From positions 62,001 to 126,000 of the IMG/VR virus record IMGVR_UViG_3300020154_000003: a DNA stretch of 64,000 nt. The stretch is one strand, 5' to 3'. The position numbers and the translations under genes are program-made. Below are positions 6,904 through 64,000 of this stretch, piece by piece; positions within the stretch are counted from its first letter, which is position 1; each line of letters opens with the position of its first letter. The notes under the pieces are model-generated. The model did no database searches and was not told where the DNA came from. It saw nothing but the letters and a program-made list of their open reading frames with translations.

Positions 6904-6994
6904 ACTAAAGAATGTCTTCTAAATAATTTTATTAATAAATACAGATGTTTTTACGAAAAGTGTTGCTTTTTATACTTTTTTGTAAAAAAATCCT

Positions 6995-7729
6995 TTATAA
7001 CAAGAATTTATTGATGCTTGTTATGATTTTTTTATGTTTATCGTTTTCATTGATGACATTTTCCCCTTTTACAGTGCCTTCAGTGAAACTCTTAGAAATC
7101 TCAGGAAATAGGTACGCTCCCGGAGTACTAGGTGAATGAACTAAGTCAAAACAGATAAGTTCAAAATCATCCTGTACGATGTTTTGGCCTCTAACTTCTT
7201 TTAGACTACCAACACCTCGACTTGAAATACCTAATCTAATCCCTCTCTTTAAATACTCAACAATTTTATCTCCGATCATACAAACAAACCCATCTCTCAT
7301 ATAAGCAGGAGATGTGATTATTTCTAGTGTGCCATAAAGAATGTGTTTATCTTCACCTTCTCCCCACCACATTTTAGTAATTCTGTGAGATACGTTTAAC
7401 AATGAAACTACTGAAGATTCAGGGTGATCAGCTTCACTTATAGCAGAATTCATATTTACTTGTTCCATGTACCTTTGTACTTCAGGAACTAAAACTTCTG
7501 CTGGATAAATTCTACCGTTCTTATTTTTTACACCCCATTTCTGAAGAATGCAATTTATAAGTACTGGTTGATTAGGTTTAATTTGAAAGTTCTCATTCAC
7601 CATTCTGTCAAACAAGTCCTTATTCATCATCTTGTCTACATACCCTGCATCCTCTTCAATGAGTAAACCAAAACCAGTTTCATTTGGCGATAATATTTTA
7701 CTTTCTCTAATTCTCAGTGAGTTCTTCAT
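6995..7729 (-). CDS. prohead protease, T4 gp21 family
   Basis: NKNGRIYP, EADHP, GISSRGVGS, FDLVHSPSTPGA motifs. Confidence 0.95.
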   Translation of the reverse strand: MKNSLRIRESKILSPNETGFGLLIEEDAGYVDKMMNKDLFDRMVNENFQIKPNQPVLINCILQKWGVKNKNGRIYPAEVLVPEVQRYMEQVNMNSAISEADHPESSVVSLLNVSHRITKMWWGEGEDKHILYGTLEIITSPAYMRDGFVCMIGDKIVEYLKRGIRLGISSRGVGSLKEVRGQNIVQDDFELICFDLVHSPSTPGAYLFPEISKSFTEGTVKGENVINENDKHKKIITSINKFLL

Positions 7730-7820
7730 TATTGTTAGAAACTTTTTGTTATAAATACTTGAGTTCTATGAATAAATAGTTTAAAAACCCTAGATTTACT
7801 ATTTATTGGAAAGAATAATC

Positions 7821-10800
7821 ATGGCAGCATCGGATAACATTATAGACCCAAATGAAATTATAACCTCTGACTCGTTTAATAAATTGGGGCTTAACGGTAT
7901 GCCAGATCATTCCAAAATGTATTTGTTCGTAGAATTAACCGCAAAAAGAAGAGGTGGCAGTATTTTAGTGACTGATGGAGTGGGATCATCTTCAAAAAGA
8001 ATATTGAAAGATGAAAATGATGCAATAAGTATCAATATGATGGGGTTCGATCAGAACACTAAAAATTACACTACAAGATGGAGCAAGAATTCTGATAATA
8101 ATGAAACAAATTTTGAAGGTTTTGGGATCACGGAAATAAATATCAACACAACCAGTAGTTATGTTCCAGTGGTTGATATTGAATTCGTTGACATTAGAGG
8201 TTCATCTTTATTTACTTTCGGTTCAAAATCCCCGTATTCAGTACTATTCAGCTTTCCACCGCCAGTATTTACCTTAACTGTTAAGGGTTATTACGGTAAG
8301 GCTTTAACCTATAATTTACATCTGGTACGCCAATCAAGTAGATTCGATGCTGCGTCAGGAAATTATTACATATCAGCCAATTTTGTTGCTCAAAAGTTTG
8401 CACCATTAACGGATGTCCTTTTCAAGTATATTGACGTTGTGCCTTTGATTAATGACACTTCTGGAGGTTCTGGTTTAAATGGCGTTGATTTTGATTTTAG
8501 CCAACCACCCAAAAATACTAGAGAACTTATCGTAAGAGCACAAAAACTATATGACGATCTTGAGAAGTTTAAAGCCAATTCTCAATTGGCAAATGATGCA
8601 GATAAATTCAGATCGGATTTTAACACCTCCCAATCACTTCTCTCGACCATAAACAATTTCAAAGCAAAGCTTGATCTTAACCTTCAAAATTTGAGTGATC
8701 TATATGTCATGGAAGTACCTAAGGATAATCCAAATGATGGTGGTGGTAATTTAAATAATGTTATCACTGAAAGATTTACTCCAATCACTTTACAGGAGTA
8801 TAATAATTTAATTAGGGTAGAGTCCCCTAATTTTCAGTCATCAAATATCAGTAGTAGATTATATATTTCTACAAAATTTGCAAATGCAGATACAACAACT
8901 GTGACTGGAACTACTGCATCGATCACAAAAAGAATAAAAAGTAACTTGCTCCAGTTGAAATTAACTATGTTAGGTGAGGCAAGTAGAGTTAACGCGAACA
9001 TTAAACCTAAAAGTAACGACATCAGAGACCCAAAAGAATTTATGGGGTCTGACGATAGATATTTTGGTATTGATATTACTGATTACTACATCAAAATCTT
9101 TCAAGATATTGAAACTAAAAGAAATCAGTTTCAAGCAAAACAAACTGAATTTAAAGATAAGGTTAATGATATTTCAGTAAGTGCATTAGGTAAAACTCCG
9201 ACAATTAAATTTATATTCGACATCCTATGTAATGATGTTGATAAGTTTTTTAATAAGCTTAAGGACGTAGATTACCTTTCCGAAATACATCACCAAAAAT
9301 ACTTTAGTCAAATCGTAACAAATAACGAATCCAAGAAAAATAAAATATCGCCTTTTCCATTAATTAAAAAGAAAACTGTTATCTCGAATTTGAATGATAG
9401 TACAACAGGTAGCATTGAGCGTGAAGAACGTGCTTATCCTCAAGAAGTGTTTAAGGATATTGAAACATTCCCTGAAGTACAGTTTGTTGAAAGCTTTATC
9501 ACTACGTTTTTGGATATTATTAAAAGCGATGAAATTCTTGACCTTAAAGAAGGAACTGACGAACAAGGTAATAATAAGTGGATACCTATCAACCCATTGG
9601 ACTCAGTTGTTAATGGTCGAATTAGTGCAATAACCCCGTATTTCGGTAAACTAAATCCAATACCTGAATTAATTACTGAGTTATTAACTAGATATTATGT
9701 GGTGACGCAATTTAGTTATGGTGAATTATTTTATCATAAGGATGGAAATATTATTACTGAATTTTTCGGTGTTGAAAGCAAACAAAATGATCTCATCTCA
9801 TTTTTAGCTAAAGCTGAGGCTGCTAATATCATAAATTCTATTGTTGATAGTAATCTTCTCAATGGACTTTCTGCACAAGCGACTCAGTGGAAATCAAATA
9901 TTCAAACTTTCTACGATTCTCTTTCTAATAACGTATCAACCTATAATACGATTCCAACTCATGGAACTGCGGGAGTTACATATTTAGAATTGAATGGCCA
10001 ACCAATTGTAAAGGATCGAACAAATTTTCTATATAAAGGATTTGAATTGTTGACTGGCGGTAAGCCAGACTTAAGGAATCCTTCTGACGATGGTAGTAAT
10101 ACAGGTGAGTTGAATGTTGTGGATAAATTTTTGGACAGATTCGCGAATAGTAGAGTTAGAAACTTTTTATTTGAAAATTTTGAATTTGAAGACTTCACTA
10201 AACAAAACATCATTTATGTTAAGGATGAGGCAAGCAGCGATAGTGGCGGGAATGATAGTGATTTTATAAAAAATGGTACAGTTCTCGACTCTGATTTATT
10301 CAGTTTCAATAGAAACGTAGATAAAACTATTTCAAACATTTATGCAGCAACATTAAGTAAAGCTGATAGCACCTTATTAACTATATTGAACGATCCTGAT
10401 ATTACAAACACAGTCAAAACTATGGTGTTTGTGTCAATGTTCGGTAGAACTCTCTCTTATTTTGATAAGGCAGTAAATAAGAAATTTGCATTCCCATCAG
10501 TAATCGAGGCTCCGAAATTTGCACATTTATACATGGGAGGTTTGGCATATTTCTACAAAGACCCAACAACCTTAATTAATGATGAAATTGACACATACAA
10601 TAATAAGTATGCAAGTTTCTTGCGTTTTGATAAGAATCTTGAAAGTGCAATACAAGTACAAAACATATCATCAATCGATGCTGAGGAATTGAAAACATAC
10701 TTCGAATCTTTTGCATCAGACACCACCTCAACTGGCTACATAACATTTGAAAACAGTGTAATTGCGTTGATCGAGGAAGTTCAAGCCCTTGGAATTAGCG

Positions 10801-12135: not shown

Positions 12136-13578
12136 ATGGCATATAAACCGCTCACCAATAAAGGTAAAGAATTCATTAGAACTAGATGTACGTCTGCAGG
12201 CGATAGATTATCTGGAAAGCAGAACTATGCATTAGGCAGAAGTAATGTTCCTGCTGGAACCGTATTCACCTCAAACGCCTACAATGATGGTGACCCAAAA
12301 ACAACTGTCGATGATCGTGAAAAAATCACAACGAATGAGCAGTTAGCTGAAAACTTGATCACATGGTTCAATTATTATGCTGAAGAATATCTGCTTGATG
12401 CTAATATTATGGCTGCTCAATGTTATGTGGAAAGCAACTATAATTTATGGGCTTTTTCCTATGGTGGTAAAAGAGGGAGTAGTGCGATGGGTATAACTCA
12501 ATTTATTGATGTTTCCATCTACGACATAATATTCAAGAATTCATATTCGTTTGAACCTGAAATTGTACTTTTAGGACACAACTTAACTGGTGACACATCA
12601 GACATAAGAACGATAGTTCCATATTATAATAATCAAGCTGCTTCAATTATAAGCACTCCCACAACAAATGCTAGAGCGATTGCCAATAGGAAACAGTTGT
12701 TTCAAAATATTGTGGATAATCCTAAAGCAATGATTAAGGCTCAGTGTCATTTAATGCATAAGATTGGGGAGAGAAACAATAATTTAGCTGCATCTTCATT
12801 ATTTGCTTACAATAGAGCAGCTAGTTTGAGGTCTAAAACCTATAATGAAGCTATTGATAAGGCGGTTAAAAAGAAGATACGAATAGAGGAAGGTACTTCT
12901 TATGTTGATAAAATATTCAAACTTTTGAATGGGACATATGGAACCAGAACAGAGAGTAGCTTTGGTAATGGAATATATCAAGGCGAAGGATTTGGGTATG
13001 GTTTTCCGAATGAAATTGATGCGGTAGCTAATAGAAATTTATCCAACACTTTATTAGTTTCAGGAAATTTTGGATTAAATACAGTTCAGGAAAAGTTCAT
13101 ACAGTCATTGCATCCAGTAGCACAAGATAAATTTAGATTGTTTTTATCTACAATAGAAAAACAGACTCCATTCACGGTTTCTTTACAAAGTGCATATAGA
13201 TCATACGCACATCAGCAAAGATTAAAAAAAGAATATGCTGTAACCAAGCCATCTGTACCTGTTTCCTCTCCGGGAAATAGTTATCATAATTTTGGATTGG
13301 CACTGGATATTGTACTGGTTAATGGATACGTTACATACGGGCATGGTCAAACTAAAAAAGAATGGATTGCAACTGGAGTTCCTAAAATAGCTTCAGACCT
13401 TGGACTAGTATGGGGTGGAGATTTTAGTAATTATGATCCTGTACACTTCGATTTGAGCAACACTTACGCTTTGAATTCATTAAAGTCTGCAGCAACGGCA
13501 CAGTTTGGTACTGATCCTAACAAGGTTAACGGAAATCAAATAGCTAATTTACAACCATCTGAAGGAGGTTATTCTTAA
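12136..13578 (+). CDS. virion-associated lysin: SLT-like transglycosylase + M15 peptidase
   Basis: VESNYN, AMGITQF, AYN (SLT); SYHNFGLALD, WGGDF, DPVHF (M15). Confidence 0.85.
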   Translation: MAYKPLTNKGKEFIRTRCTSAGDRLSGKQNYALGRSNVPAGTVFTSNAYNDGDPKTTVDDREKITTNEQLAENLITWFNYYAEEYLLDANIMAAQCYVESNYNLWAFSYGGKRGSSAMGITQFIDVSIYDIIFKNSYSFEPEIVLLGHNLTGDTSDIRTIVPYYNNQAASIISTPTTNARAIANRKQLFQNIVDNPKAMIKAQCHLMHKIGERNNNLAASSLFAYNRAASLRSKTYNEAIDKAVKKKIRIEEGTSYVDKIFKLLNGTYGTRTESSFGNGIYQGEGFGYGFPNEIDAVANRNLSNTLLVSGNFGLNTVQEKFIQSLHPVAQDKFRLFLSTIEKQTPFTVSLQSAYRSYAHQQRLKKEYAVTKPSVPVSSPGNSYHNFGLALDIVLVNGYVTYGHGQTKKEWIATGVPKIASDLGLVWGGDFSNYDPVHFDLSNTYALNSLKSAATAQFGTDPNKVNGNQIANLQPSEGGYS

Positions 13579-14403: not shown

Positions 14404-16425
14404 TTAGCTGGACATTGAATTTATAATATCATCGTCTATATCCTTCAATTTTTCGTCCTCCAATTCGTTAGACTTAACCACATTTTCTACCTTATTTTCC
14501 TTATAAGCGAAGTTTTCTGGATTTGTCGCCTCATTGTTAAATGTACCATTACTGTATAATAGCTTATCAATTTCGGTGATCATAGTCCTTGCGGTCTTAT
14601 TTAACTGATCGTTTTTCTTGGCAAATTCATCCTCACTTTGCTTTGCAGCCGTGACGTTTTGTTTGCCCATCAAATCTTCTAATAATTCATCAAATGTTTT
14701 CTTTTCAGTAATAATGTTCTTTTGTGAACTTACTGATTCTTGAGTATTTCCCCCTGCTGGTGCGGCTTGACTTGCACTGCCTTGTGGCTCAGGTAAGGCA
14801 GCAGGAGTTTGCGGAGCGTTAGTTGCTCCACCTTCTGGTGGTGGATTGCTTTCAGGCTGTCCTTCACCTCCCTGTGGAGGTGGGCCACCTTGAGTCAATG
14901 CAGCATCAGGGTTTCCGTATTTCTGGTCAATGTCATCAAATACACCAGTCTTAGGGATAATAACGGCAGTATCTTGAAGTTCTTGACTAATCGCTCTTTC
15001 CATTCTCTGGTTTTTCAAATCTTCAACAATTTCTTTATCAGACCAGCCAAGGATATTTCTCTTAGCCCATGTATGTGAAGATGCTGCGATTCCTGATCCT
15101 TCGTTGCGAGTAATTTCAGTGTACAACTGAATTTTAGCAGTTAATGTTTCTGTCTTAAGCTTATCTGCTTGTGTTGAAGGATTGGTTAATGAAAGACTGA
15201 ATTCGTGTAAATCATTTTCATATCCCTTGAGGAACAAATGAATGATTGCCATTTTATTCAATTCTTGCAATAATGCTTGTTGTATTTTGTTGATTTTTTT
15301 AGCAAATCTAACATCCATCTGTGCAAGGTTTTTACCTTCACCTGCACTACCTGAGAAACCAAGGAAAGGTTTAGGGATTCCAAGACCACTAAATAAATTG
15401 TCACGCAAGTAAGCGATGTCAGCAATAGCGTCCAAGTTGGTTGCTCCGGGTAATGTTTCAATCACTGTGCTTTTGCCATCACGTACTGGTACAAATATAT
15501 CTTCGTCATTCCCTAAGATATTAAATCTGTAGTCGATTTGACCGTTGTTTTTATAAACTTGTTGTTGTTTCTTGAATTTAGTAGCAACTTTATATACGTA
15601 TGCTTCAATGTCTTTATCGTCAATGTTACCTACTTCTATTTTGAAAACTCTTTTTTCACCTGCTCTCAAAATACGATAAGTTAACATTGCATCTTCAGCC
15701 ATAACTAATTGTCTGAATACTCTTCTTATTTTATTAAGTACAGAAGAACCATACGGTAAGTGCTTGTCATCACCAAGTAGTCTGAAGTGAGCAATTTCAA
15801 ACATGTTGAATTCGTCACCAGTTACTTTATTTTTGAAAACAGTACGTGCTTTTCTGTCTTTAACTTCGTCTTTTCTTTCCATGTCGAAGTTAACTAGCTG
15901 ACGTACATAACGTATACCCTTTCCTTTTTCTCCTAGCGTGTACACAAAATTATCACCGTATTTGGCAAGATTTCTAGCCCAAAAAGGTAAATTAACATTT
16001 ACGTTTACAACACCGTAGAAAAAGTCTTCAAGAATAGTTTTAATTCTTTCCTTCTTTGAAAATATATTAAGCATTTTACCATTATCACCAATGGTAGTTG
16101 CTTCTTCTGAAATTAAATCGAGGGCTGATGCGATAAGTGGATAGTACTCCATACCTTCGTAGTCGACGTATGCAGGTATTCTATGACCTTCATACTGCAT
16201 GGCTTTTTGAAAACCGTGCTGTTGTACTTGGTAAAATTTATCAAAGATAAGTTCTCTCTGCTGAAGTTCTAATGCTGCTCGTTGAATATCTTCAGGAGTT
16301 TCAGCCTTAAGAATAATTTTCTTTTCTGGTTGTTGGTTCTGATTAGTTTGACCGCCAAACCCGAAACCATCCAAATTAAGAAATGAATTTATATCCTGAT
16401 ATATCGTTTTTTTGTTCTCAGCCAT
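14404..16425 (-). CDS. portal protein, T4 gp20 family
   Basis: QLVMAEDAMLTYRILRAGEKRVFKIEVGN, ETLPGATNL..IADI.YLR motifs. Confidence 0.95.
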   Translation of the reverse strand: MAENKKTIYQDINSFLNLDGFGFGGQTNQNQQPEKKIILKAETPEDIQRAALELQQRELIFDKFYQVQQHGFQKAMQYEGHRIPAYVDYEGMEYYPLIASALDLISEEATTIGDNGKMLNIFSKKERIKTILEDFFYGVVNVNVNLPFWARNLAKYGDNFVYTLGEKGKGIRYVRQLVNFDMERKDEVKDRKARTVFKNKVTGDEFNMFEIAHFRLLGDDKHLPYGSSVLNKIRRVFRQLVMAEDAMLTYRILRAGEKRVFKIEVGNIDDKDIEAYVYKVATKFKKQQQVYKNNGQIDYRFNILGNDEDIFVPVRDGKSTVIETLPGATNLDAIADIAYLRDNLFSGLGIPKPFLGFSGSAGEGKNLAQMDVRFAKKINKIQQALLQELNKMAIIHLFLKGYENDLHEFSLSLTNPSTQADKLKTETLTAKIQLYTEITRNEGSGIAASSHTWAKRNILGWSDKEIVEDLKNQRMERAISQELQDTAVIIPKTGVFDDIDQKYGNPDAALTQGGPPPQGGEGQPESNPPPEGGATNAPQTPAALPEPQGSASQAAPAGGNTQESVSSQKNIITEKKTFDELLEDLMGKQNVTAAKQSEDEFAKKNDQLNKTARTMITEIDKLLYSNGTFNNEATNPENFAYKENKVENVVKSNELEDEKLKDIDDDIINSMSS

Positions 16426-16494: not shown

Positions 16495-18546
16495 TTATCG
16501 GTATTTATTTCCGAAGACCCATGCGTTTGAGCCATAGGGGTTATTTCTATGAACTACATAATCATGTGAGTCTGGCATTTTAGTTTCTGCCTCTCTAATA
16601 TGCTCATTATCATTTACAACCAGTATTGCATTTAACATACTTTTAACTCTTTCTACATTATCATTGACTTTATGTAGTTCGCAGTTAATTACATATAGTG
16701 CAATCGCCAATCCCATAATCAAATCATCATGGAATGTTCGTTTATGGTCAGCAAGACGATTCTTATTTTCAACAATTACGAAGGTTTTGAATTCGTTGGT
16801 CAACCTAACCGAACGAATAACAACATCCTCCATCCTGACACATCTCTCCATTTCTTGAAGTACCAAAGGGCGATTACTACCAATCATAAATCCCGGAATT
16901 AAGTCAACCTTTTTAGTTTGACCATTACCAGCATCGCGTTCAACAGTCTTCACATAAACGTTAAGTCTGTCTCTTGATGGCTTGTGCTGGACATCGGAAT
17001 AGTGTACGTTATTATATCCGAACATTTTCAATGATTCCATTGCAGACACACCGTAACCACCACTCACGTCAATTACACAATATGCATTATTGTACTTTTG
17101 TCCATAGTAATAGGCCATTTCAGCTAATTGCTGTGGTGTTACTTTACCACAGTATTCAGCAACTTCTTCTGAAATAGTTCTTTTTCTCTTTCTCGTTTTT
17201 TTGATTCCGTTATGTAGGTATTCTTGATCGACTAATGTTTCAGTAGTTTTCAGAATCACGATAGTTGAAAAGTCTTCTCCATAACCACTGGCAACGTCAA
17301 GAGCCATAACGTATTTTGCTTCAGGAATTGGGTCTTCGAAAATGTACATGAATTTATCTGTGTACTCAGTACGAAGAGGCTGTCTTTGTTCGTTATCTTC
17401 AATACGCTTTACAAATTCCTCATTGATGAAGTTATCACCAGAACCTAAAAACGAACAAAGAATCTCTTGAGCAAGTCTTCGCATGTCACCGTTGTAACCT
17501 GCCTTTGCATTTTCAAACCAACTACTGGTTGCAGAAAATCTTTTCTTAATTAACTCATCACGAACTTCTTTTGTAAAATTGTCGTCCTTAATTCGTATTT
17601 CAGTATCTTTTCCTTCGTCCTTAACCCACTCAAGATCAATCTCACCAGTTTCTTTATTGCGTATGTATCTAGGATCGTTATACCACCACAATTCAATAGC
17701 ATTAACGTATGGTTTTTTACCTTCCGATCTAGCTACAACGGATGAGTTGAAGGTTTTATAAAAAATAGGGTCTAAACCATTTGGAGTCGAAACAAAAATT
17801 ACGCGACCGCCAGTGTTTCGTACTGCAGGGCCAGCAGATTCCCAAAACTTTTCTCCCTTCTCCGTCCACGCAGTTTCATCCCAAAATACTAGCGTAGGTG
17901 TCGGCCCTCTAAGTTTGGTCGCAGCAAAAGCTTTTACTTGACTACCATTCGAATATTTTTTGTGACCCATAGAATCTTTACCACCGACTTTAGCAAGGCT
18001 AGGTCGCACGTATGATGGACAGTTCTCAATGAAATCAATGATGTCACTCATCAACTCATCACGAGCGGTTTCAAGTTTATCCGCAATAACTGCTACGTAT
18101 CTATTTTTATTGAAAGTAATATACCACGCGATATATGCACAAGTTGTTGTTGACACACCAGCCTGTCTGTATTTGTTAGCTACATTCTCTTTGTTAGACA
18201 TGTAAGCTTTGATGAGTTCCTTTTGGAATGGGAAAAGTTTGAAAGGCACGATTGAACCACCATCTCCGACTGTTTGGTCAAATACGGTTAGATAAGTCTC
18301 AATGTAATAAACTGGATCGATACCACATCTGTAGATTTCATATGCCTGTTCATCAACATTGAGAAGATTCGCTGGTTTAGCTTCCCCACTTTTTGTGATT
18401 ACAATGGGTTGGTTAACGTGTCGTTTTCTTAACTCACTAACTAATTTTTTGAGTTCTATCTTCCTGAGTTCATCAGTAGTAAGTGGACGATCATTATTAT
18501 CCGGTATAAAGTCTAAATCATCATCATCAGTTTTTTTCTTACTCAT
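16495..18546 (-). CDS. terminase large subunit, T4 gp17 family
   Basis: KYRQAGVST, WDETAW, STPNG, ALDVASG, HDDLIM motifs. Confidence 0.95.
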   Translation of the reverse strand: MSKKKTDDDDLDFIPDNNDRPLTTDELRKIELKKLVSELRKRHVNQPIVITKSGEAKPANLLNVDEQAYEIYRCGIDPVYYIETYLTVFDQTVGDGGSIVPFKLFPFQKELIKAYMSNKENVANKYRQAGVSTTTCAYIAWYITFNKNRYVAVIADKLETARDELMSDIIDFIENCPSYVRPSLAKVGGKDSMGHKKYSNGSQVKAFAATKLRGPTPTLVFWDETAWTEKGEKFWESAGPAVRNTGGRVIFVSTPNGLDPIFYKTFNSSVVARSEGKKPYVNAIELWWYNDPRYIRNKETGEIDLEWVKDEGKDTEIRIKDDNFTKEVRDELIKKRFSATSSWFENAKAGYNGDMRRLAQEILCSFLGSGDNFINEEFVKRIEDNEQRQPLRTEYTDKFMYIFEDPIPEAKYVMALDVASGYGEDFSTIVILKTTETLVDQEYLHNGIKKTRKRKRTISEEVAEYCGKVTPQQLAEMAYYYGQKYNNAYCVIDVSGGYGVSAMESLKMFGYNNVHYSDVQHKPSRDRLNVYVKTVERDAGNGQTKKVDLIPGFMIGSNRPLVLQEMERCVRMEDVVIRSVRLTNEFKTFVIVENKNRLADHKRTFHDDLIMGLAIALYVINCELHKVNDNVERVKSMLNAILVVNDNEHIREAETKMPDSHDYVVHRNNPYGSNAWVFGNKYR

Positions 18547-26848: not shown

Positions 26849-27109
26849 ATGGAAGTTGAAGTGTTGAACGCATTTGTTACCAAATGGAATGATACCACGG
26901 TAATATGTTACATGGTTGAGGAAGAGTCACTTAGAGAGTTCAATAGGACACCATTATTTGCTGATTATAAGCTATTTAAAGGTAAGGAAGTAACGTTCGA
27001 AGTGAACATCCAGCCCGGAGAAATGAAAGTGCTATGTAAGGAGAAAGGAACTAAGAAAATAGTTCAAAAGAAACGGTACTGGCTTTGGAAGCTTAAAAAT
27101 ATGTTTTAG
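26849..27109 (+). CDS. hypothetical protein
   Basis: 86 aa; promoter 26799-26821. Confidence 0.6.
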   Translation: MEVEVLNAFVTKWNDTTVICYMVEEESLREFNRTPLFADYKLFKGKEVTFEVNIQPGEMKVLCKEKGTKKIVQKKRYWLWKLKNMF

Positions 27110-27258: not shown

Positions 27259-27334
27259 TGGGGCGATGAGTAGGAGTCGAACCTACATCTGCCCGCCTCA
27301 ATGCAGGCCGTGTTACCACAACACTTCCCTCGCC
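27259..27334 (-). tRNA. atypical tRNA (His-type 8-bp acceptor, 8-nt loop CATTGAGG)
   Basis: D and T arms intact, encoded CCA, anticodon ambiguous. Confidence 0.6.
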
Positions 27335-31895: not shown

Positions 31896-31967
31896 TGTAT
31901 GTTCGTCTAGGGGTCTAGGACACTCCCTTCATCGGGGGAAACATTGGTTCGAATCCAATACATACTC
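31896..31967 (+). tRNA. atypical tRNA (Glu-type D arm, irregular anticodon loop TTCATC[G])
   Basis: Acceptor GTATGT/ACATAC, T arm ATTGG-TTCGAAT-CCAAT. Confidence 0.55.
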
Positions 31968-33605: not shown

Positions 33606-33693
33606 CGCGGGATAGAGTAGTGGCCTAACTCGTCAGTCTCATAAGCTGAACCGTCTCATAAGGATGGCGTTGGTTCGAATCCAACTCCCGCTA
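33606..33693 (+). tRNA. tRNA-fMet-like(CAT) with extra CAT-bearing arm
   Basis: CGCGGG acceptor with C1 mismatch; GTCTCATAAG occurs twice. Confidence 0.8.
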
Positions 33694-33830
33694 CAAAATT
33701 TGTTAAACTTAAAGGTATGTATTATGGATGTCCAAAATGTGGTTCAACTCAAGTAAGTGTTCTAACAGAAAATTATTATATCTGTTTGGGTTGTAACAAT
33801 ACATGGACTGAAAATATAAAAAATAAACAT

Positions 33831-36475: not shown

Positions 36476-36684
36476 TGGGAGAAATTGAATTAAATATATC
36501 AGTAAACAGAAGAACGAAAGAACTAATTGGATATTGGTCGCCTGACGGTGATCCGATAGGAATTATTGTTAAGGCATATGCTGTTGATGATCTCGAAAGA
36601 AAATTCGAGGAAGCAAAAAAACAATACATAAACTTGCATGGTGGTAGCCATGAGGTGTATGTGCAATTAAAAAAAGAGGACTAA
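36475..36684 (+). CDS. small protein, weak HicB-like pattern
   Basis: GIIVKAYAVDDLERKFEEA. Confidence 0.4.
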   Translation: MGEIELNISVNRRTKELIGYWSPDGDPIGIIVKAYAVDDLERKFEEAKKQYINLHGGSHEVYVQLKKED

Positions 36685-36699
36685 TAATCCTCTTTTTTC

Positions 36700-37449
36700 T
36701 TATGCTTTCTGACAATCTACATGCAAGCAGTTGTTTTCCCTTTCTGCAAGATACCCTCTCAATCCGGGGATTTTTTTATCTTTCATGGCCTTTAGAATAA
36801 TTGCAAGTTCGTCATTAATACCATTACCTCCACCGCCAATGTCAAGTGCTAAACCCGGAGCATGTGGTGATGAACCAATAACTTTACCTTTTCTATTCAC
36901 CGTACCACGGATGTAGTTCATCAATACTGTTGCAGGTAGTGGTGGATTAATAATTACATTTATGTTGAGTAGATTACTCCAAGCCATTTGCCAAACATAG
37001 TCACCGTTCGGTAACTTATCGTTCACATCACAACTCATCGCTTCAGGATATTTCTTATCCAAACCTTTTCTAACTAGATAACCTTTAATGATGCGAAGTT
37101 GATCTTTCGAATCTCTCAGACCAGATGTTACGTATGCTTTGTGATTTGCTTCTTCAAAATACTTATCTAAAGCCACGATTACTGGCTCAATAACAGGTGT
37201 TAAAACAACACTATCTTGTACGATCAGCCATTTGTTGTCTTCAGCAGATGGAACCCCTAAAGCATTCCATGATATTTTACCTACAACACCATCAGCCAAA
37301 AGACCTTTTTTCTGTTGAAATTCTTTTACTTTGGCTTCAGTACCGTTACCGAAATCACCATCAGCTATACAAGTAAACCCATGTTTTGTTAGCAGTTCTT
37401 GCAATTGAACGACTAAAACGCCATCATCACCCTTTTTTAATACAGTCAT
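36700..37449 (-). CDS. endolysin candidate: peptidoglycan-binding domain + M15-like peptidase
   Basis: LKKGD.G..V..LQ..L...DGDFG..TE..VK.FQ...GL.ADGVVG; SPH..GLALDI; HVD. Confidence 0.8.
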   Translation of the reverse strand: MTVLKKGDDGVLVVQLQELLTKHGFTCIADGDFGNGTEAKVKEFQQKKGLLADGVVGKISWNALGVPSAEDNKWLIVQDSVVLTPVIEPVIVALDKYFEEANHKAYVTSGLRDSKDQLRIIKGYLVRKGLDKKYPEAMSCDVNDKLPNGDYVWQMAWSNLLNINVIINPPLPATVLMNYIRGTVNRKGKVIGSSPHAPGLALDIGGGGNGINDELAIILKAMKDKKIPGLRGYLAERENNCLHVDCQKA

Positions 37450-37480
37450 ATTATTTATAATTTCTTATAAATAGTTGACT

Positions 37481-39244
37481 TTAGATTTTTACGACACCGT
37501 GTTTATATTTACCTTTAGATGTAACAAAAATCATTTCGTTGTTCATCACATACTGCTCAACAATAATTTCCTTTTCTGGTTCAGGTTCGTTTGGTATCGG
37601 TTCAGGTTCTGGCTCAGTTGTAGTAACAATACCCTTCACACCGAATCCTTTTGCCTTCCAGTAACAATCATCAGCTAAACGAAGATCATCAGGAGGGAAA
37701 AATGATTGAACAGTATTCGGATTATGTCCAGCTTTATCATTTCTGATACCATTTTCATCCCATGTCAATGTTAAAAATTGCTCACTTTCTTTTGGTCTAA
37801 TAACAGTTGCACCAGTTTTTGTTACGTGATCTTGGATACATTTACAAAAAACATATGTACCATCTTCTCTTGAATCAATCGCGATGTCATCGTATTTCCA
37901 GATTGTTGGAGTGTTATCAGGGCCATCAAAATACTTTCCATATGTTTGATGCCATACCTTAATTTTACTTACAGGAGTTTCACCGAAACCACTGTTAATA
38001 TATTTTGGTGCTGGTAAAGCTTTGTCGAGAATGACTTCACCAATTTCAGTTGCTAAGAAGTCTCTAGTATCTTCAAATACTCTTTCTTTAGAACCGTCAT
38101 GTATAATTCTTTCGTAATGTACGGGGTCAGTACCGTGTCTGTTGGAGATGATATAAGGAATTTTCTTTTCGCCAGTACCATCAGCATATGAATTATTGAA
38201 GCCACGGAAGTAAACGTTTTTGTATTTCCACGTAATACCCATCTTGGCACTGTTGTGAAGGTATTGACCTTGATTCCTTCCATCATTAAGGAGAACATTT
38301 TCAACTAATGAAACACCGTTAGGTGCATTTGTAGGGTCTTCACCCGAACCGTATACTGCCAATCCTTGAGATGCAAAACCGTCAAGAATAACGTTACTTA
38401 ATTTGTTAACACCTGACGACACAACCCACTGCATACCAGTATCTTGATAAGGCTGGAAGGCATGTAAATAATCCATATCTGATCCGTAGATAACAATGTC
38501 AGCTACATCTGCACCACCGATCATATGTTGTAACTGAAGCGATTCAGCAGCAGTTCTAGCCACAATACCATTCTTAATTTTGAGATTTCTCAATTTAGCT
38601 TTGGCTCCTGATTGTGTTGAGCCGATGTAGAATCCTTCGCCACCGCCAGTGTCATGTATATAGAAATTACTAATGTCGATGCTTTCGACAAATATATCGA
38701 CCGCACTGCTGTATAATCTAACTCCTGAGAAACCGAATTGAATTTCGAATCCGTCAAGTTTAATTGATCCACCATTTAAAGTTGAAAGTTCAATACCATG
38801 ACCACCAGTCATGTTTAGATTTTTAACGTGTATACCGAAGTTTCCTGTAAGGAATTTTCTTGAGTAAGGCCATTCGAGAAGACCTTTATATTTTTCACAC
38901 ACACCAGAAATGTGTAGGTTCACTAAGCCATGTGATGTTATTGCTCCACATACAACTTTTGTATTTGGAATATTTTTTATTGATGCTGACTTAATCAGCC
39001 ATCCTGTTTGTCCGTTTGAAGTATTCCTAAATTGATATTTATTAACGAAACCTAACTTCTCGCCATCAAGCCAGATCACTGCACCTTCCCTTAAAGTCGG
39101 CCATTCTTTAACCATGAAGTAGTAGCTTACTTCTTTTGAACCATCTTCAAATGTTCTGGTTGGTGAATCGATAATTAAATCTCCGGGTGTGATATAATTT
39201 CCGTATAAGGAAATGTCTTCTGCTTTTGCAATTCTATTTGCCAT
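37481..39244 (-). CDS. right-handed beta-helix protein (depolymerase-like)
   Basis: NFYIHDTGGGEGFYIGS and repeated beta-helix rungs; PEPE linker. Confidence 0.6.
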   Translation of the reverse strand: MANRIAKAEDISLYGNYITPGDLIIDSPTRTFEDGSKEVSYYFMVKEWPTLREGAVIWLDGEKLGFVNKYQFRNTSNGQTGWLIKSASIKNIPNTKVVCGAITSHGLVNLHISGVCEKYKGLLEWPYSRKFLTGNFGIHVKNLNMTGGHGIELSTLNGGSIKLDGFEIQFGFSGVRLYSSAVDIFVESIDISNFYIHDTGGGEGFYIGSTQSGAKAKLRNLKIKNGIVARTAAESLQLQHMIGGADVADIVIYGSDMDYLHAFQPYQDTGMQWVVSSGVNKLSNVILDGFASQGLAVYGSGEDPTNAPNGVSLVENVLLNDGRNQGQYLHNSAKMGITWKYKNVYFRGFNNSYADGTGEKKIPYIISNRHGTDPVHYERIIHDGSKERVFEDTRDFLATEIGEVILDKALPAPKYINSGFGETPVSKIKVWHQTYGKYFDGPDNTPTIWKYDDIAIDSREDGTYVFCKCIQDHVTKTGATVIRPKESEQFLTLTWDENGIRNDKAGHNPNTVQSFFPPDDLRLADDCYWKAKGFGVKGIVTTTEPEPEPIPNEPEPEKEIIVEQYVMNNEMIFVTSKGKYKHGVVKI

Positions 39245-40441: not shown

Positions 40442-40529
40442 GCATCCGTGGCAGAATGGAGAATGATGCCCCACACTTTTAATGTGGACTGTCGTAAGAC
40501 TAACGTAGGTTCGATCCCTACCGGATGCA
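40442..40529 (+). tRNA. tRNA-Lys(TTT) with long variable arm
   Basis: CCACA-CTTTTAA-TGTGG plus GTC-GTAA-GAC arm. Confidence 0.8.
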
Positions 40530-40591
40530 CAAACGTAGATTTATGCGGTGAATAGAGACGCTATTCATCGCAGAATATGCGGAGATTAGTC

Positions 40592-45944: not shown

Positions 45945-47096
45945 ATGGTTCTCTATCTAGCTTTTGCTATTCCGGTCTTAGCTGCTTTAGTTCTATACAC
46001 ATTCTTCAAACACAAAACCAAGATATGGGAAGTAGCAATTCCGATGCTCTTCACAATCCTTTTGATTTTGGGTGCAAAAGCCATTTGTGTTAGTTCACTA
46101 ACTGGCGACACAGAATATTTGGGTGGGATGGTTTATGAAGTTAGATATTACGAAGAATGGGATGAATACATTCACCAGACTTGTAGTAGAGAATGTTGCT
46201 GCTCAAAAGATTCAGATGGACATGAATCATGTAGCACCGAATACTACGATTGTTCTTACGTGGATAACCATCCAGAATATTGGGAGGTAGTGACAACCCT
46301 AGGCTCATTCAATGTCTCTGAAAATTATTATAGGTATCTGGTAAAAAAATTCGAAGTTGCCCCGACCTTTAAAGACATGCATAGAGATTATCACAGCATC
46401 GATGGTGATATGTACTTTGCGAAATGGGATAACACAGACGAAAAGTTGGAACCTGTCACTATTACTCATTCGTATGAAAATCGACCTAAAGTATCAAGCA
46501 GCATTTATCGCTTCGAAGAAGTTGATACTTTTGATATAAGACAATATAAACCATACAACTATCCTGAAGTTAATGGACTGAAACAGCGTGTTATATTGGG
46601 TTATGACGATCCTAAAGCGGAACATGCACTACAAGTTCTTAATTCAAGGTTGGGTAAAGAGAAACAAGTAAGGGTTTATTTTTTGATTTTTAAAAATCAA
46701 CCATTAGATGCTGGTTCGATTCAGGAACGGTATTGGGAAGGTGGAAATAAAAATGAGTTGAATGTGTGCATCGGGATTGACGATAATAATAACGTCAAGT
46801 GGGCCTACGTTTTCTCGTGGACAGAACAAAGCGAAGTCAAAGTAAATATCAGAACGCATATTCAGGAATCAAAAAAGCTTGATCTTTATGAATATGTTAA
46901 CTATACGAAAGCAGAGGTTCTTGAGAATTGGGTTAGGAAGCAATTTAAAGATTTTGATTATCTGACAATCGAACCAACCATGAAGCAGATCATATGGATT
47001 TATATCTTGACGATCATCTTCAATGCAGGTATTTGTGTCTGGATAGTTAATAATGAATTTGATGATGAACCGAGAGGAAAATACTACTGGAAATGA
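45945..47096 (+). CDS. membrane protein with Cys-rich extracytoplasmic segment
   Basis: Two N-terminal TMs, one C-terminal TM; paired with LemA-like gene. Confidence 0.65.
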   Translation: MVLYLAFAIPVLAALVLYTFFKHKTKIWEVAIPMLFTILLILGAKAICVSSLTGDTEYLGGMVYEVRYYEEWDEYIHQTCSRECCCSKDSDGHESCSTEYYDCSYVDNHPEYWEVVTTLGSFNVSENYYRYLVKKFEVAPTFKDMHRDYHSIDGDMYFAKWDNTDEKLEPVTITHSYENRPKVSSSIYRFEEVDTFDIRQYKPYNYPEVNGLKQRVILGYDDPKAEHALQVLNSRLGKEKQVRVYFLIFKNQPLDAGSIQERYWEGGNKNELNVCIGIDDNNNVKWAYVFSWTEQSEVKVNIRTHIQESKKLDLYEYVNYTKAEVLENWVRKQFKDFDYLTIEPTMKQIIWIYILTIIFNAGICVWIVNNEFDDEPRGKYYWK

Positions 47097-57486: not shown

Positions 57487-57576
57487 TCTTGGGTTGCTAT
57501 AGTGGCCGAATAGTCCAGACTGTTAATCTGGTGAACGCAAGTTCCATCGCAGGTTCGACTCCTGCCCCAAGAGCCA
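57487..57576 (+). tRNA. tRNA-Asn(GTT) with long variable arm
   Basis: CCAGA-CTGTTAA-TCTGG, GAAC-GCAA-GTTC arm, encoded CCA. Confidence 0.85.
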
Positions 57577-61539: not shown

Positions 61540-61612
61540 GTCTTAGTAGCACAATTGGCGGTGCAACGATCTCTAAAATCGGAGGATGCGGGTTCGATCC
61601 CCGCCTAAGGCA
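61540..61612 (+). tRNA. amber suppressor tRNA (CTA)
   Basis: GTCTTAG/CTAAGGC acceptor; CGAT-CTCTAAA-ATCG. Confidence 0.85.
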
Positions 61613-61613
61613 C

Positions 61614-61797
61614 AAATAATTCTCCTGCTTGAAAGCCATACAACCACGAATATGACCTATTCGCTTGACAAAGACCAGTTCTGTTCCAGCAGTTAATGGT
61701 GGCCTAGGGATAAGATGAATCCATTAGGATGGAACCTCGTAAGAGTGATAAGAATTACGTCTTATTCCAATCTGGAAGTTGGACAGGAGAATTATTT
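61614..61797 (+). ncRNA. 184-nt RNA candidate (6S-sized)
   Basis: Perfect 14-bp closing stem AAATAATTCTCCTG/CAGGAGAATTATTT. Confidence 0.5.
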
Positions 61798-61894
61798 AAA
61801 TTGTATTGTTTTTTTGAAATGTAGTATTTACTTTTACTAAAATTCAGACCCTTAAGGTCTGGTTTTGAAATAATATTACATTTTCAAGAAGATA

Positions 61895-62674
61895 ATGAAA
61901 GCAAAAAAAACTAAGAAAACTGCTAAAACCAGCACAAAAAGACCCGCCAAGAAGAAGCCTACCGCAAAAGCAAAAGCCTCATCAAAGACCAAAGCGAAAG
62001 CTAAGGTTAAATCCAAATTGGATTATACACACATAATCGCAGTACTGGACAAATCCAGTTCTATGCATTCAGTAGCGAATGCTGCCATGAAAGGTTTTAA
62101 TGAATTCCTGACATCACAAAAAGCCTTAAAAGGGAAAGCCACTATGGACGTGTTATTGTTCAGTAGTGCTGATAAAATCGACTATATCTCGCAGGGTGTT
62201 GACATCAGTGAGGTTGCTGAATTAACCTCTGAGACTTATCGTCCTCAGGGCACTACAGCATTATTCGATGCAATCGTGAAAGCCACTTCAACTTACAAAC
62301 TGAAGTATGATGAATTGAAGCCTTCAAAGAGACCCGATAAGATTTTGGTAATTGCTATTACTGATGGAGAAGAAAATAGCAGCACAGAATTTCCTATAAG
62401 TAAAGTTGGTGATGTCAAAGCATTGATCACAAAACGTAAGTCGGAAAACTGGCAGTTTATGTTCTTGTGCTCGACTGAAGATGCCGTGTTAACTGGCGAA
62501 TCTCTTGGAGTTTCAAGAGGTAACACAATGCAGTTTACCAATAGCGATCTTGGTAATCAAGCCATGTACTCTGCTGTGGCATCTGCTGCGACCATGTACA
62601 GATCGACTTCACTGAGAAGTAAGAGTTTTAGCAAGGTCAGCGATAATTTGCTGGCTGAGGATGATATTTCCTAA
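61895..62674 (+). CDS. vWA domain protein with Lys/Ala-rich N-tail
   Basis: MIDAS LDKSSSM, GTTALFDAI, ITDGEENSS. Confidence 0.88.
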   Translation: MKAKKTKKTAKTSTKRPAKKKPTAKAKASSKTKAKAKVKSKLDYTHIIAVLDKSSSMHSVANAAMKGFNEFLTSQKALKGKATMDVLLFSSADKIDYISQGVDISEVAELTSETYRPQGTTALFDAIVKATSTYKLKYDELKPSKRPDKILVIAITDGEENSSTEFPISKVGDVKALITKRKSENWQFMFLCSTEDAVLTGESLGVSRGNTMQFTNSDLGNQAMYSAVASAATMYRSTSLRSKSFSKVSDNLLAEDDIS

Positions 62675-62683
62675 ATTTAATTA

Positions 62684-62977
62684 ATGGGTGGTATGAATAA
62701 TACCATCCATTTTTTTATGAAACGAAAGAAAGAACCAGTACCAATATTTCGAGATTACGTAGTGTTCTATGAGGTTAAGAATGATAAAAACTCTACCAAA
62801 TGGGACATGTTATGGCGAGAAACAGGCGAAAAGGCAGGTGATGTAGAATTTTTTAAAGATAAATTCGACACTTATGTTTATAATGTTTTCCCACAATTTA
62901 AGCGTTTAAGCGGGGTTTGGGTTGATCTCAGGAAACTTATAAAAGAAAAATCTGGTCACGACATTGCAAAATTCTAA
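62684..62977 (+). CDS. hypothetical protein
   Basis: ORF; true start probably at a downstream Met. Confidence 0.5.
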   Translation: MGGMNNTIHFFMKRKKEPVPIFRDYVVFYEVKNDKNSTKWDMLWRETGEKAGDVEFFKDKFDTYVYNVFPQFKRLSGVWVDLRKLIKEKSGHDIAKF

Positions 62978-63000
62978 AACATTTTTTAGATTTGCACGTA
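62978..63000 (+). promoter_or_regulatory. AAC-N16-CGTA promoter of amber-island operon
   Basis: AAC ATTTTTTAGATTTGCA CGTA. Confidence 0.7.
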
Positions 63001-63022
63001 TATATAGAAAACACCAAAAATC

Positions 63023-63403
63023 ATGAAAAAAGAACTGTAGATTTCCAATCCTAGCGATCTTAAACTGGTAACCATTACCAGACAAGACCTACCAATGGGC
63101 GCAATCATTGCCCAAACAGTACATTCAACAGCATCATTTGCCATCCAGTACCCTGACAAATTTCGTCATTGGGAACAAACATCAAACTACGTAGCGTGTC
63201 TAGCTGCAAAGGATGAGCAAGAACTACTCAAGTATTACGACCGATTAATAAAGGCAGGAGCCGATGTGGTATTATTCCGTGAACCCGACATGGATAACCA
63301 AGCAACATCCCTATGCTTTTACGGCACTCCTGAGTTTCGGAAAATTACAAGCAGTTTACCATTAATGTTCAAGCAGAAGAAGGAGGTGGCTATGGCAGCA
63401 TAA
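63023..63403 (+). CDS. peptidyl-tRNA hydrolase Pth2-like, with in-frame TAG at codon 6
   Basis: MKKEL*ISNPSDLKLVTITRQDLPMGAIIAQTVHS...FREPDMDNQATSL. Confidence 0.8.
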
Positions 63404-63411
63404 TTTCACAT

Positions 63412-63486
63412 CCTTTGGTAGCTTAAGCTGGTTAAAGCCCATGACTGATCCTCATGGAGATGGTTGTTCGAATCGGCCCCAAAGGA
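63412..63486 (+). tRNA. atypical tRNA (GAT anticodon, loop CTGATCC)
   Basis: CCTTTGG/CCAAAGG acceptor; CATGA/TCATG stem; C37. Confidence 0.7.
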
Positions 63487-63493
63487 CTTAAAA

Positions 63494-63573
63494 CCTCGTG
63501 TAGCTTAGTGGTCTAAAGCAGCATACTTATAATATGCCTATCGTCTTAAACGGTTCGAATCCTACCACGAGGA
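63494..63573 (+). tRNA. tRNA-Ile(TAT)-like
   Basis: GCATA-CTTATAA-TATGC; poorly paired T stem. Confidence 0.65.
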
Positions 63574-63585
63574 CTTTAAAAAAAT

Positions 63586-63658
63586 GAGAGTATGGCTCAG
63601 TGGTTAGAGCAAGGACTTCTAAACTCCTAGGTCGTGGGTTCGAATCCCACTACTCTCT
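63586..63658 (+). tRNA. amber suppressor tRNA (CTA)
   Basis: GAGAGTA/TACTCTC acceptor; AGGAC-TTCTAAA-CTCCT (C31:C39 mismatch). Confidence 0.75.
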
Positions 63659-63677
63659 CTCAATAAAATAAAAAGTT

Positions 63678-64000
63678 ATGAAAACAATTAGAGAAACAAG
63701 TCAACCAGTAATCGATGCTCTTTTGAAGCATGTCGATCTTTGTGATGATCATTAGATACTTGAACCTTCAGCAGGCTTCGGTAATCTTGCGGATGGAATC
63801 GTAAGAGCGTGTCCTGACATAAAAGTTGATTGTGTCGAATTGAATGAACGCAACGTACAAATTCTCAAGGAGAAAGGGCATAACGTAGTTGGTCGTGACT
63901 TCTTTCACTTCAAAACAGAAAAGAAGTACTGGTACATCATCGCAGCACCAAACTTCAAAGACAATATTGATGTCGAACACATCATGAAGATGTACACACA
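63678..64000 (+). CDS. SAM-dependent methyltransferase with in-frame TAG at codon 26 (runs off window)
   Basis: MKTIRETSQPVIDALLKHVDLCDDH*ILEPSAGFGNLA...VDCVELN...GRDFF...IIAAPNF. Confidence 0.75.

Follow-up and report, generated by a model that had tools for sequence, protein, structure and literature searches.

The region under study lies in a 64,000-nucleotide window (positions 62,001 to 126,000 of IMG/VR record IMGVR_UViG_3300020154_000003), part of a 366-kb T4-like soil phage (366,038-bp contig Ga0196965_1000004) that uses the standard genetic code. The tRNA genes, the two protein genes and the in-frame TAGs at 61540-64000 described here are on the plus strand. A first tRNA(CUA) gene is found at 61540-61612, with A73 and a 5-nt variable loop. 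A PTH2-like peptidyl-tRNA hydrolase gene occupies 63023-63403 and is followed by a cluster of tRNA-Ile(GAU) at 63412-63486, tRNA-Ile(UAU), which reads ATA, at 63494-63573, and a second tRNA(CUA), with U73, at 63586-63658. This Ile-Ile-CUA cluster is conserved in four related loci (L007, L008, L171 and L172; loci of relatives are numbered with the prefix L). Nineteen nucleotides downstream of the second tRNA(CUA) begins a gene for a small SAM-dependent methyltransferase of 175 codons, which starts at 63678 and runs past the window end at 64000 to window-equivalent position 64205. A 6-kb portion of the window gave no match to GenBank phages by megablast, and exact-match scans of IMG/VR with the 3' halves of both tRNA(CUA) genes found only the source contig. 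Reads from four soil runs showed that relatives at about 90% identity exist, though this comparison did not extend to the TAG positions discussed below.

Both tRNA(CUA) genes are real, as the first-pass annotation had observed. They were called by ARAGORN and by the Rfam model RF00005, at 57.6 and 67.1 bits respectively against a cut-off of 29, and both have CTA at positions 34-36 in a canonical 7-nt loop (CUCUAAA and UUCUAAA) with U33 and A37. Each has one mismatch in the anticodon stem, A27.G43 in the first and C31.C39 in the second. Across 69 distinct suppressors in related loci, U33 is present in 67 and a purine at position 37 in all. Aminoacylation and insertion of an amino acid at UAG were not assayed, and the evidence for them is only indirect, namely the conserved in-frame TAG in adjacent genes. 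ARAGORN labels these genes tRNA-Pyl, but that tRNA has a 3-nt variable loop, a very short D-loop and a single base between the acceptor and D stems, and requires the pylS and pylBCD genes. Both tRNAs here have two bases at positions 8-9, 8-nt D-loops and 5-nt variable loops, and no Pyl-related Pfam family appears in the gene lists for 91 kb of this genome. Similarity to typed tRNAs (about 70-77% identity to mixed isotypes) did not point to one isotype origin, the second suppressor being nearest to the tRNA-Gly(UCC) of the window; isotype-specific models were not applied. It had been foreseen that the case would be refuted if the tRNA at 63586 in fact decoded AGA through a 9-nt loop. This alternative has no support, as the orthologues keep CUA (the tRNA is identical in L007 and L008) and an in-frame TAG sits 95 nt downstream of it.

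The long genes of the window are intact under code 11, including a gp23-like capsid gene (3670-5340), a gp20-like portal gene (14404-16425), a terminase gene (16495-18546) and ORFs of up to 1438 aa. A census of stop codons, one of the checks suggested in the first-pass annotation, was carried out with simple gene calls on the window plus 8.7 kb and gave 67 TAA, 13 TGA and 10 TAG. No gene of 200 aa or more ends in TAG (0 of 29), and all TAG-ended genes are 142 aa or shorter. As the first-pass annotation had listed, ORFs end in TAG at 27109, 30887, 42554, 51053, 55892 and 58874; three of these TAGs abut or overlap tRNA genes (27109, 55891, 58873). A search for release factor or aaRS genes had likewise been proposed, and none was found in the Pfam lists for 91 kb, nor was there a homologue of the release factor-like protein of L010.

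The first-pass annotation overlooked the fact that the two genes flanking the second suppressor each carry exactly one in-frame TAG. In the PTH2-like gene the reading frame is ATG, 4 codons, TAG (63038-63040, codon 6, followed by ATT) and then 120 codons, whereas gene callers report only 63095-63403. No ATG, GTG or TTG lies between this TAG and the conserved domain. Position 1 of the Pfam PTH2 profile (PF01981; 31.4 bits against a cut-off of 23) aligns 12 residues upstream of the code-11 ATG, the only code-11 start codon, and in the structural model strand beta-1 is formed by residues 8-14 of the post-TAG piece. The top 15 fold hits of the model are all Pth2/Bit1 (TM 0.56-0.77), and the family profile matches solved Pth2 (2zv3) over its full length at 1.6e-10. 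The family has invariant Q, H, E-P-D and T; E-P-D aligns with the D-A-G motif and T is kept, but the Lys of the GK motif falls in a gap, so that the residues do not decide whether the catalytic site is retained, and activity was not measured. In the methyltransferase gene the TAG (63753-63755, codon 26, followed by ATA) immediately precedes SAM-binding motif I (ILEPSAGFG), and the next ATG lies beyond this motif. The 25 residues before the TAG are homologous to the N-termini of stop-free relatives. The gene matches Pfam N6_Mtase (PF02384, of the amino-methyltransferase group of class I SAM methyltransferases; 21.3 bits against a cut-off of 20.4), LEPSAGxG is invariant in the family, and the model (pLDDT 87) has the class I Rossmann fold, with hits including CamA, M.BseCI, KsgA and lmo1582. 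These hits are generic, and catalytic motif IV, (D/N)PP(Y/F), is absent, the family having A-P-N-F where distant relatives have N-P-P-F; the substrate is therefore unknown. Homology and fold show that coding sequence continues across both TAGs. These are the only genes with a credible in-frame TAG in the 91 kb of this genome that was read. A third candidate, a leader before gene 45945-47096 (ATG, 5 codons, TAG, then CAT), was judged to be due to chance, since it has no homology support and no purine after the stop.

In order to determine whether this arrangement is conserved, we examined the DNA of related loci. The same two genes each carry one TAG in L007/L008, L009, L010, L012 and L171-L173, and the two-gene state is kept in relatives down to about 30% protein identity and in several phage groups. 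Of 72 distinct PTH2-like loci, 61 have a leader consisting of ATG, 0-7 codons and then a stop, including those of the 735-kb phage, the cultured Tenacibaculum phage pT24 and cluster C mycobacteriophages. In 48 of these 61 a suppressor tRNA with the matching anticodon lies within 5 kb: TAG occurs with CUA in 46 and with UUA in 0, while TAA occurs with UUA in 2 (two lineages) and with CUA in 0. In L031 both genes carry TAA and the locus has a tRNA(UUA). The match is not complete, since 12 TAG-leader loci show no tRNA(CUA) within 4-5 kb and 6 loci with an ordinary start still have one nearby. The base after the leader stop is a purine in 61 of 61 cases, a context that favours nonsense suppression in E. 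coli, and the PTH2-like genes themselves end in TAA or TGA. In the methyltransferase tree, a clade of 28 holds 27 genes with one stop, which has moved between four sites, one of which is TAG in L023/L024 and TAA in L031; the outgroup of 10 has no stop and no suppressor nearby. These statistics are not corrected for shared ancestry, and for the methyltransferase the link with the tRNA amounts to essentially one phylogenetic contrast; a phylogenetically corrected co-occurrence test over all jumbo-phage genomes, including TGA with UCA, was not made. Clustering of all TAG-containing ORFs from 109 loci (944 kb) gave only these two recurrent families.

The closest database proteins have Q at the position of the TAG, which at first suggested that TAG is read as Gln. 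We rejected this inference when their contigs proved to have TAG, the apparent Q being a gene-caller artefact. DNA-verified stop-free relatives have R/K, K, variable residues, or E/Q at the four sites, an outcome that speaks neither clearly for nor clearly against decoding as glutamine, and the inserted amino acid was not identified.

The explanation that we favour, and in which we are reasonably confident, is that the two tRNA(CUA) genes are working amber suppressors of a jumbo phage that otherwise uses the standard code, and that their evident, physically linked targets are the single UAG codons of the two genes beside the second suppressor. In this view a ribosome reaching either UAG would be released by host RF1, giving a useless peptide, or would read through with the phage tRNA, giving the full enzyme, so that synthesis of both enzymes would be conditional on, and scaled to, suppressor activity in the infected cell. 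Our analysis establishes that the tRNAs are real, that coding sequence continues across both TAGs, that one stop per gene is conserved and has moved between sites, that the stop type matches the suppressor anticodon, and that only these two gene families are affected. That read-through actually occurs is an inference, there being no direct evidence of read-through, tRNA charging or expression, and so are the suggestions that the inserted residue is unimportant, because the sites lie at tolerant positions, and that the purpose is control. Such control could act as a timer or, as we favour, as dose-matching, in which an enzyme that recycles peptidyl-tRNA is made in proportion to the read-through that causes stalled ribosomes; why these two enzymes should be gated is conjecture. 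The interpretation in the first-pass annotation is thus upheld in part. Conditional, local recoding is supported, but the targets are not the TAG terminators of the small accessory ORFs listed there, since read-through extensions after those terminators are no shorter than after other stops (no enrichment of backup stops, p=0.18) and no homology evidence attaches to them. Its other suggestion, an early stage of TAG reassignment, is not supported.

Other explanations were considered. It is possible, though unlikely, that the ATG-to-TAG leader is a mini upstream ORF, with termination at TAG and re-initiation at the adjacent ATT, GTN or ATA codon, and that the tRNA(CUA) has some other role. The leaders are very short and unconserved, the codon after the stop is ATT, GTT, GTA or GTG in most loci, and in mycobacteriophage Cane17 the annotated GTG start follows the TAG directly, so for the PTH2-like gene this cannot be excluded. 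However, ATT, GTA and GTT are poor start codons, re-initiation does not explain why the stop type follows the suppressor anticodon, and it cannot rescue the methyltransferase, in which the TAG lies at codon 10, 17, 26 or about 130, inside conserved sequence. General or incipient reassignment of TAG (code 15), with these two genes simply the first to acquire TAG, seems very unlikely. The suppressor tRNAs, the low GC content (36-38%) and the dominance of TAA as terminator would fit it, Borges et al. (bioRxiv 10.1101/2021.08.26.457843) propose suppressor acquisition as a precursor to recoding, and 275 kb of the genome was not read. Against this, capsid, portal, terminase and a cell-wall hydrolase have no in-frame TAG, TAG still terminates 10 of 90 called genes, and the identical two-gene state persists across deep divergence and several phage groups with no third family in 944 kb, suggesting a stable end state and not a transition.

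Least likely of all is that the two genes are amber pseudogenes or leaky mutants kept alive by a suppressor that exists for another reason, and that the arrangement has no regulatory meaning. The TAG sites do lie at variable, tolerant positions and a suppressor would rescue any amber mutation, but exactly one stop is kept in 27 of 28 methyltransferases and 61 of 72 hydrolases, it has been relocated at least three times rather than lost, the sequence on both sides stays conserved, and no other gene family shows this. A further possibility, which we hold only tentatively and which extends our explanation rather than excluding it, is that the main job of the suppressors lies elsewhere, in reading through host or phage TAG terminators or interfering with host translation, and that the two gated genes are only compensators. 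The 6 loci with a tRNA(CUA) next to a PTH2-like gene with an ordinary start indicate that the linkage is older than the gating, a circuit whose only targets are its own helpers would be circular, and Xanthomonas phage XacN1 carries two CUA suppressors but neither gene. However, no extension after a TAG terminator shows homology or special features here, and the XacN1 authors found none either (PMC5852040).

In TAG-recoded crAss-like, Lak and other phages (Borges et al.; Peters et al., PMC9523058) a phage tRNA(CUA) in a standard-code host also reads in-frame TAG, and recoding is proposed as a switch that makes some genes depend on the suppressor. In those phages, however, tens of genes, mostly structural and lysis, carry many TAGs and coding density rises under code 15, while here exactly two tRNA-related genes carry one TAG each. 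XacN1 is a jumbo myovirus of about 385 kb with a near-complete tRNA set, Thg1 and two tRNA(CUA) genes in a standard-code genome, and its suppressors resemble the second suppressor of the window from the D-arm to the T-arm. Its authors found no targets by extending TAG-terminated genes, and we found no homologue of either gated gene and no clear TAG-bearing ORF beside its suppressors; it is therefore not a member of this module. A survey covering PTH2 of jumbo phages (Iyer et al. 2021, PMC7824862) does not mention suppressor tRNAs or stop codons, a search of its text finding neither term. Two further comparisons are analogies only, and the first was not tested. Release factor 2 (prfB) is autoregulated by an in-frame UGA at codon 26, an early stop in a translation-factor gene that lets the cell's own decoding activity set the gene's output, but prfB escapes by +1 frameshifting and senses RF2, while here escape would be by a suppressor tRNA and the quantity sensed would be suppressor against RF1. 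The bar minigenes of phage lambda are two- or three-codon ORFs prone to peptidyl-tRNA drop-off, which must be cleared by peptidyl-tRNA hydrolase. They are free-standing and toxic in Pth-deficient cells, while the mini-ORF here is in frame with the hydrolase gene itself.

A more speculative reading, possible but doubtful on present evidence, is that jumbo phages of several lineages carry a self-contained suppression-sensing circuit, made up of a suppressor tRNA and, beside it, a peptidyl-tRNA hydrolase gene, often with a methyltransferase gene, whose own translation must pass the cognate stop codon. The read-through capacity of the cell would then directly set the level of enzymes that act on the suppressor tRNA or on the stalled peptidyl-tRNAs it causes, a homeostat analogous to RF2 autoregulation but built from a tRNA.

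The finding also bears on annotation, since the hydrolase is called N-terminally truncated in the JGI calls for this contig and in the GenBank record of pT24, the methyltransferase is called as a 121-aa fragment, and other pipelines silently translate the TAG as Q. The question is open to direct test in cultured systems, namely Tenacibaculum phage pT24 and Bxz1-like mycobacteriophages on M. smegmatis. Suppressor tRNAs turn up in phages that plainly use the standard code, where they have been left unexplained, as in XacN1, or read as a first step towards recoding. The arrangement described here is conserved across dozens of giant phages, including cultured ones, and may explain some of these orphan suppressors by giving them concrete, conserved targets in a stable state in which, in our interpretation, a stop codon serves as a private gate for two tRNA-related genes. 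It would offer a natural example of single-codon, tRNA-dependent control of expression, and the ochre variant (TAA with tRNA-UUA) shows that the logic, not the codon, is what is conserved.

The window, positions 62001-126000 of the 366,038-bp JGI soil-metagenome contig Ga0196965_1000004 (IMGVR_UViG_3300020154_000003), encodes a gp23-like major capsid protein, a gp20-like portal, a T4-type large terminase and a UvrD helicase, and it carries 52 tRNA genes covering all 20 amino acids. Its GC content is 33-38%. Loci fetched from this contig are identical to the window over their overlap. Among the tRNA calls at 27259-27333, 31896-31967, 33606-33694, 40442-40530 and 57487-57576, two tRNA-like genes are called with a 2-base anticodon, while several tRNAs (Met, Lys, Asn) are 89-90 nt long, which is unusual for those isotypes and suggests inserts or introns.

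The first-pass annotation had reported two tRNAs with a CUA anticodon in a phage that otherwise uses the standard code, and this observation holds. ARAGORN and Rfam agree on tRNAs at 61540-61612 and 63586-63658, with discriminators A73 and U73, respectively, and each has one mismatch in the anticodon stem. An AGA-decoding 9-nt loop in the tRNA at 63586 had been put forward as a finding that would overturn the assignment; however, both tRNAs have CUA in an ordinary 7-nt anticodon loop. Neither has the architecture of tRNA-Pyl, and that ARAGORN label only reflects the anticodon. All long ORFs are intact under code 11. A count of stop codons, which had also been suggested as a genome-wide test, was made over the window plus 8.7 kb using a simple gene set of our own, and gave TAA 67, TGA 13 and TAG 10, with TAG used only on genes of 142 aa or fewer.

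What the first-pass annotation missed is that the DNA next to the second suppressor contains two genes with one in-frame TAG each. The first of these, at 63023-63403, reads MKKEL, TAG, and then 120 residues. The Pfam PTH2 profile starts at the seventh residue after the TAG, 12 residues before the only code-11 start codon, and a profile of the family matches solved Pth2 structures over their full length (2zv3, 1.6e-10). In the predicted structure of this protein the first beta strand lies in the part that the code-11 ORF would lack, and the top 15 fold matches are all Pth2/Bit1. The second gene starts at 63678, is 175 codons long and ends 205 nt beyond the window. It has a TAG at codon 26, directly before the SAM-binding motif ILEPSAGFG. 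The 25 residues before this TAG are homologous to the N-termini of stop-free relatives, and the next ATG lies beyond motif I. The encoded methyltransferase is a class I enzyme nearest in fold to N6-adenine methyltransferases, though it has APNF in place of NPPF in motif IV, so its substrate is unknown.

A scan of all frames found no other credible case in the window, and none appeared in 91.2 kb of this genome (25% of the total) after extension in both directions. In locus L181, about 8 kb upstream of the window start, a KTSC-domain gene (940-1698) ends in TAG and the next ORF lies in the same frame 12 codons later, such that read-through would fuse them. A second, TAG-free paralogue with the same FREPD motif as the PTH2-like protein, not recognized by Pfam, is found at window-equivalent positions 69253-69735 (17359-17841 of locus L001). 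The 97-aa ORF at 62684-62977, between the vWA gene and the hydrolase gene, is absent from relatives of about 90% identity in other soil runs, where it is replaced by about 60 nt, and a terminator-like hairpin at 62683-62711 overlaps its start.

Relatives keep the same two interrupted genes. Close relatives from other soil runs (loci L007/L008, L012, L171 and L172) show 77-88% methyltransferase identity, while more distant ones include L009 at 68%, L010, on a 286-kb contig, at 60%, and L173. All have one TAG in each gene and, where the flank suffices, a tRNA(CUA) beside them, and every other gene in these loci is TAG-free in frame. L009 also contains an IS605-type TnpA/TnpB pair in its tRNA region (6157-7825), and a TonB-dependent receptor gene lies on the L173 contig (5575-7500). 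The L010 relative encodes three further translation-related genes near the module, at 2293-2847, 12146-13276 and 15206-15832: a short release-factor-like protein with a GGQ motif (184 aa, PCRF+RF-1), a CCA-adding enzyme and a HisRS-like fragment. Release factor and aaRS genes had been named in advance as something to look for in the present genome; no counterpart of these three genes was found in the 72.7 kb searched by tblastn, nor in the Pfam lists for 91 kb.

The possibility that the TAG is read as glutamine was considered because the closest database proteins show Q at this position. However, these proteins do not translate from their own DNA, which has TAG. Public protein collections hold full-length versions of these genes (proteins P0001, P0002 and P0009; loci L171-L173) with Q at the stop because some pipelines chose code 15 for short contigs, and these residues say nothing about the residue inserted. 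DNA-verified stop-free relatives have R/K, K, variable residues, or E/Q at the four sites at which stops occur in the methyltransferase. We infer that the sites are tolerant and that the identity of the residue matters little.

The methyltransferase was examined across 160 loci. In a maximum-likelihood tree of 38 close homologues, one well-supported clade of 28 contains every stop-bearing gene. The stop occupies four sites: codon 26 (six genes), codon 10 (three), codon 17 (fifteen) and codon about 130 (three). At the last site, loci L023 and L024 have TAG and L031 has TAA. Only L015 in this clade has no stop, while the sister clade of 10 has no stop and no suppressor within 4 kb. A tRNA(CUA) lies within 4 kb in 20 of 24 TAG-bearing loci and in 0 of 12 stop-free ones, although this count is essentially a single evolutionary contrast because the stop-bearing genes form one clade. 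The stronger argument is that the stop has been relocated at least three times but almost never lost. A distant homologue inside a very large ORF (L061, 4001-4429) has an in-frame TAG at the same position, just before VLEPSAG, though no tRNA is found in this 4.4-kb locus.

The hydrolase is the more widespread partner. Of 72 distinct loci, 61 have a leader of ATG, 0-7 codons and then a stop directly before the conserved domain, 58 with TAG and 3 with TAA. These include the huge metagenomic phage genomes LR745206, LR756500, LR756501 (735 kb), LR756502 and LR756504. In LR756501 (locus L175) the PTH2-like gene (3995-4318) has a second in-frame TAG inside the domain, and two tandem tRNA(CUA) genes lie 2.4 kb downstream. 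Cultured phages are also represented. Tenacibaculum phage pT24 reads ATG AAA TAG ATA, its annotated CDS starts 81 nt downstream of where homology begins, and an annotated tRNA-Sup lies 2.5 kb upstream, while mycobacteriophage Cane17 reads ATG TAG GTG and has a tRNA(CUA) 250 nt downstream. The stop type follows the suppressor found in the locus: TAG with CUA in 46, TAG with UUA in 0, TAA with UUA in 2 (L031 and L230) and TAA with CUA in 0 (Fisher p about 9e-4, uncorrected for ancestry, as are the other counts). In L031 both the hydrolase and the methyltransferase carry TAA, and the locus has a tRNA(UUA). The base after the leader stop is a purine in all 61 cases. Eleven loci lack a recognizable ATG-to-stop leader, most of them having an ordinary start, and six of these still have a tRNA(CUA) within 0.7 kb, so the gene-tRNA linkage is older than the gating.

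In order to test whether other genes are affected, every TAG-containing ORF of 90 codons or more from 109 loci (944 kb) was pooled and clustered. Only these two families recur, with 84 and 34 members. A small third cluster consists of a hydrolase N-terminus fused to an endonuclease-like ORF; in L017 (669-1880) and five other loci this is a second copy of the hydrolase N-terminus, with its leader and TAG, which looks like an insertion into a duplicated gene.

The 69 distinct suppressors in these loci (66 CUA, 3 UUA) are type I tRNAs with U33 in 67 and purine-37 in all. Some tRNA calls in related loci rest on ARAGORN alone. Their acceptor stems and discriminators vary widely (A 38, G 17, U 11 and C 3), even between close relatives: at the syntenic position, the window, L007 and L172 have U73, L012 has A73 and L171 has G73. 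Comparisons aimed at their isotype origin gave no resolved assignment. A tRNA-Ile (GAU or UAU) is the commonest immediate upstream neighbour of the suppressor, being found in 15 of the 27 suppressors that have a neighbour within 200 nt, as in the window (63412-63658) and in loci L007, L171, L172, L018, L020, L030, L034, L041, L042, L079 and L179. The tRNA-Ile(GAU) next to the hydrolase gene in the window (63412-63486) has C at position 37 of its anticodon loop (CUGAUCC), where a purine is expected. The codon after the in-frame stop is usually Ile (ATT or ATA), and the UAG-AUU/AUA pair is thus read by two adjacent tRNA genes.

Recoded phages and their suppressors are well described, and PTH2 has been noted in jumbo phages, in a survey whose text contains neither "suppressor" nor "stop codon". 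We found no report of a stop-gated hydrolase or methyltransferase beside suppressor tRNAs, though this was a limited literature search and is not proof of novelty. The authors describing Xanthomonas jumbo phage XacN1 reported two CUA suppressors with no identifiable targets. XacN1 lacks both genes described here, and about 2.5 kb directly after its two suppressor tRNAs and ORF088 (36560-39053 of locus L180) has no annotated gene and no clear ORF in any forward frame.

The data fit programmed, suppressor-dependent translation of two specific genes, although there are no expression, charging or protein data. They do not fit a code-15 genome, because structural genes are unrecoded and TAG still terminates genes, although only 25% of this genome was read. 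Nor do they fit decaying pseudogenes, because one stop is kept, the stop moves between sites and the flanking sequence stays conserved. Termination followed by re-initiation remains possible for the hydrolase alone, but does not explain the methyltransferase or the match between stop and anticodon. The first-pass annotation had proposed either conditional, local recoding or an early stage of TAG reassignment, and it is supported only in part: the local recoding agrees with our results, whereas an early step towards reassignment does not, because the state is old and stable.

While the tRNAs, the interrupted genes and their conservation are observed directly in the sequences, the reason that these two genes are gated is not shown and can only be suggested. 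We favour dose-matching, in which read-through of terminators leads ribosomes to mRNA ends and produces peptidyl-tRNA, such that a hydrolase whose own synthesis needs read-through would be made in proportion. A timing role, as proposed for the late genes of recoded phages, is equally compatible.
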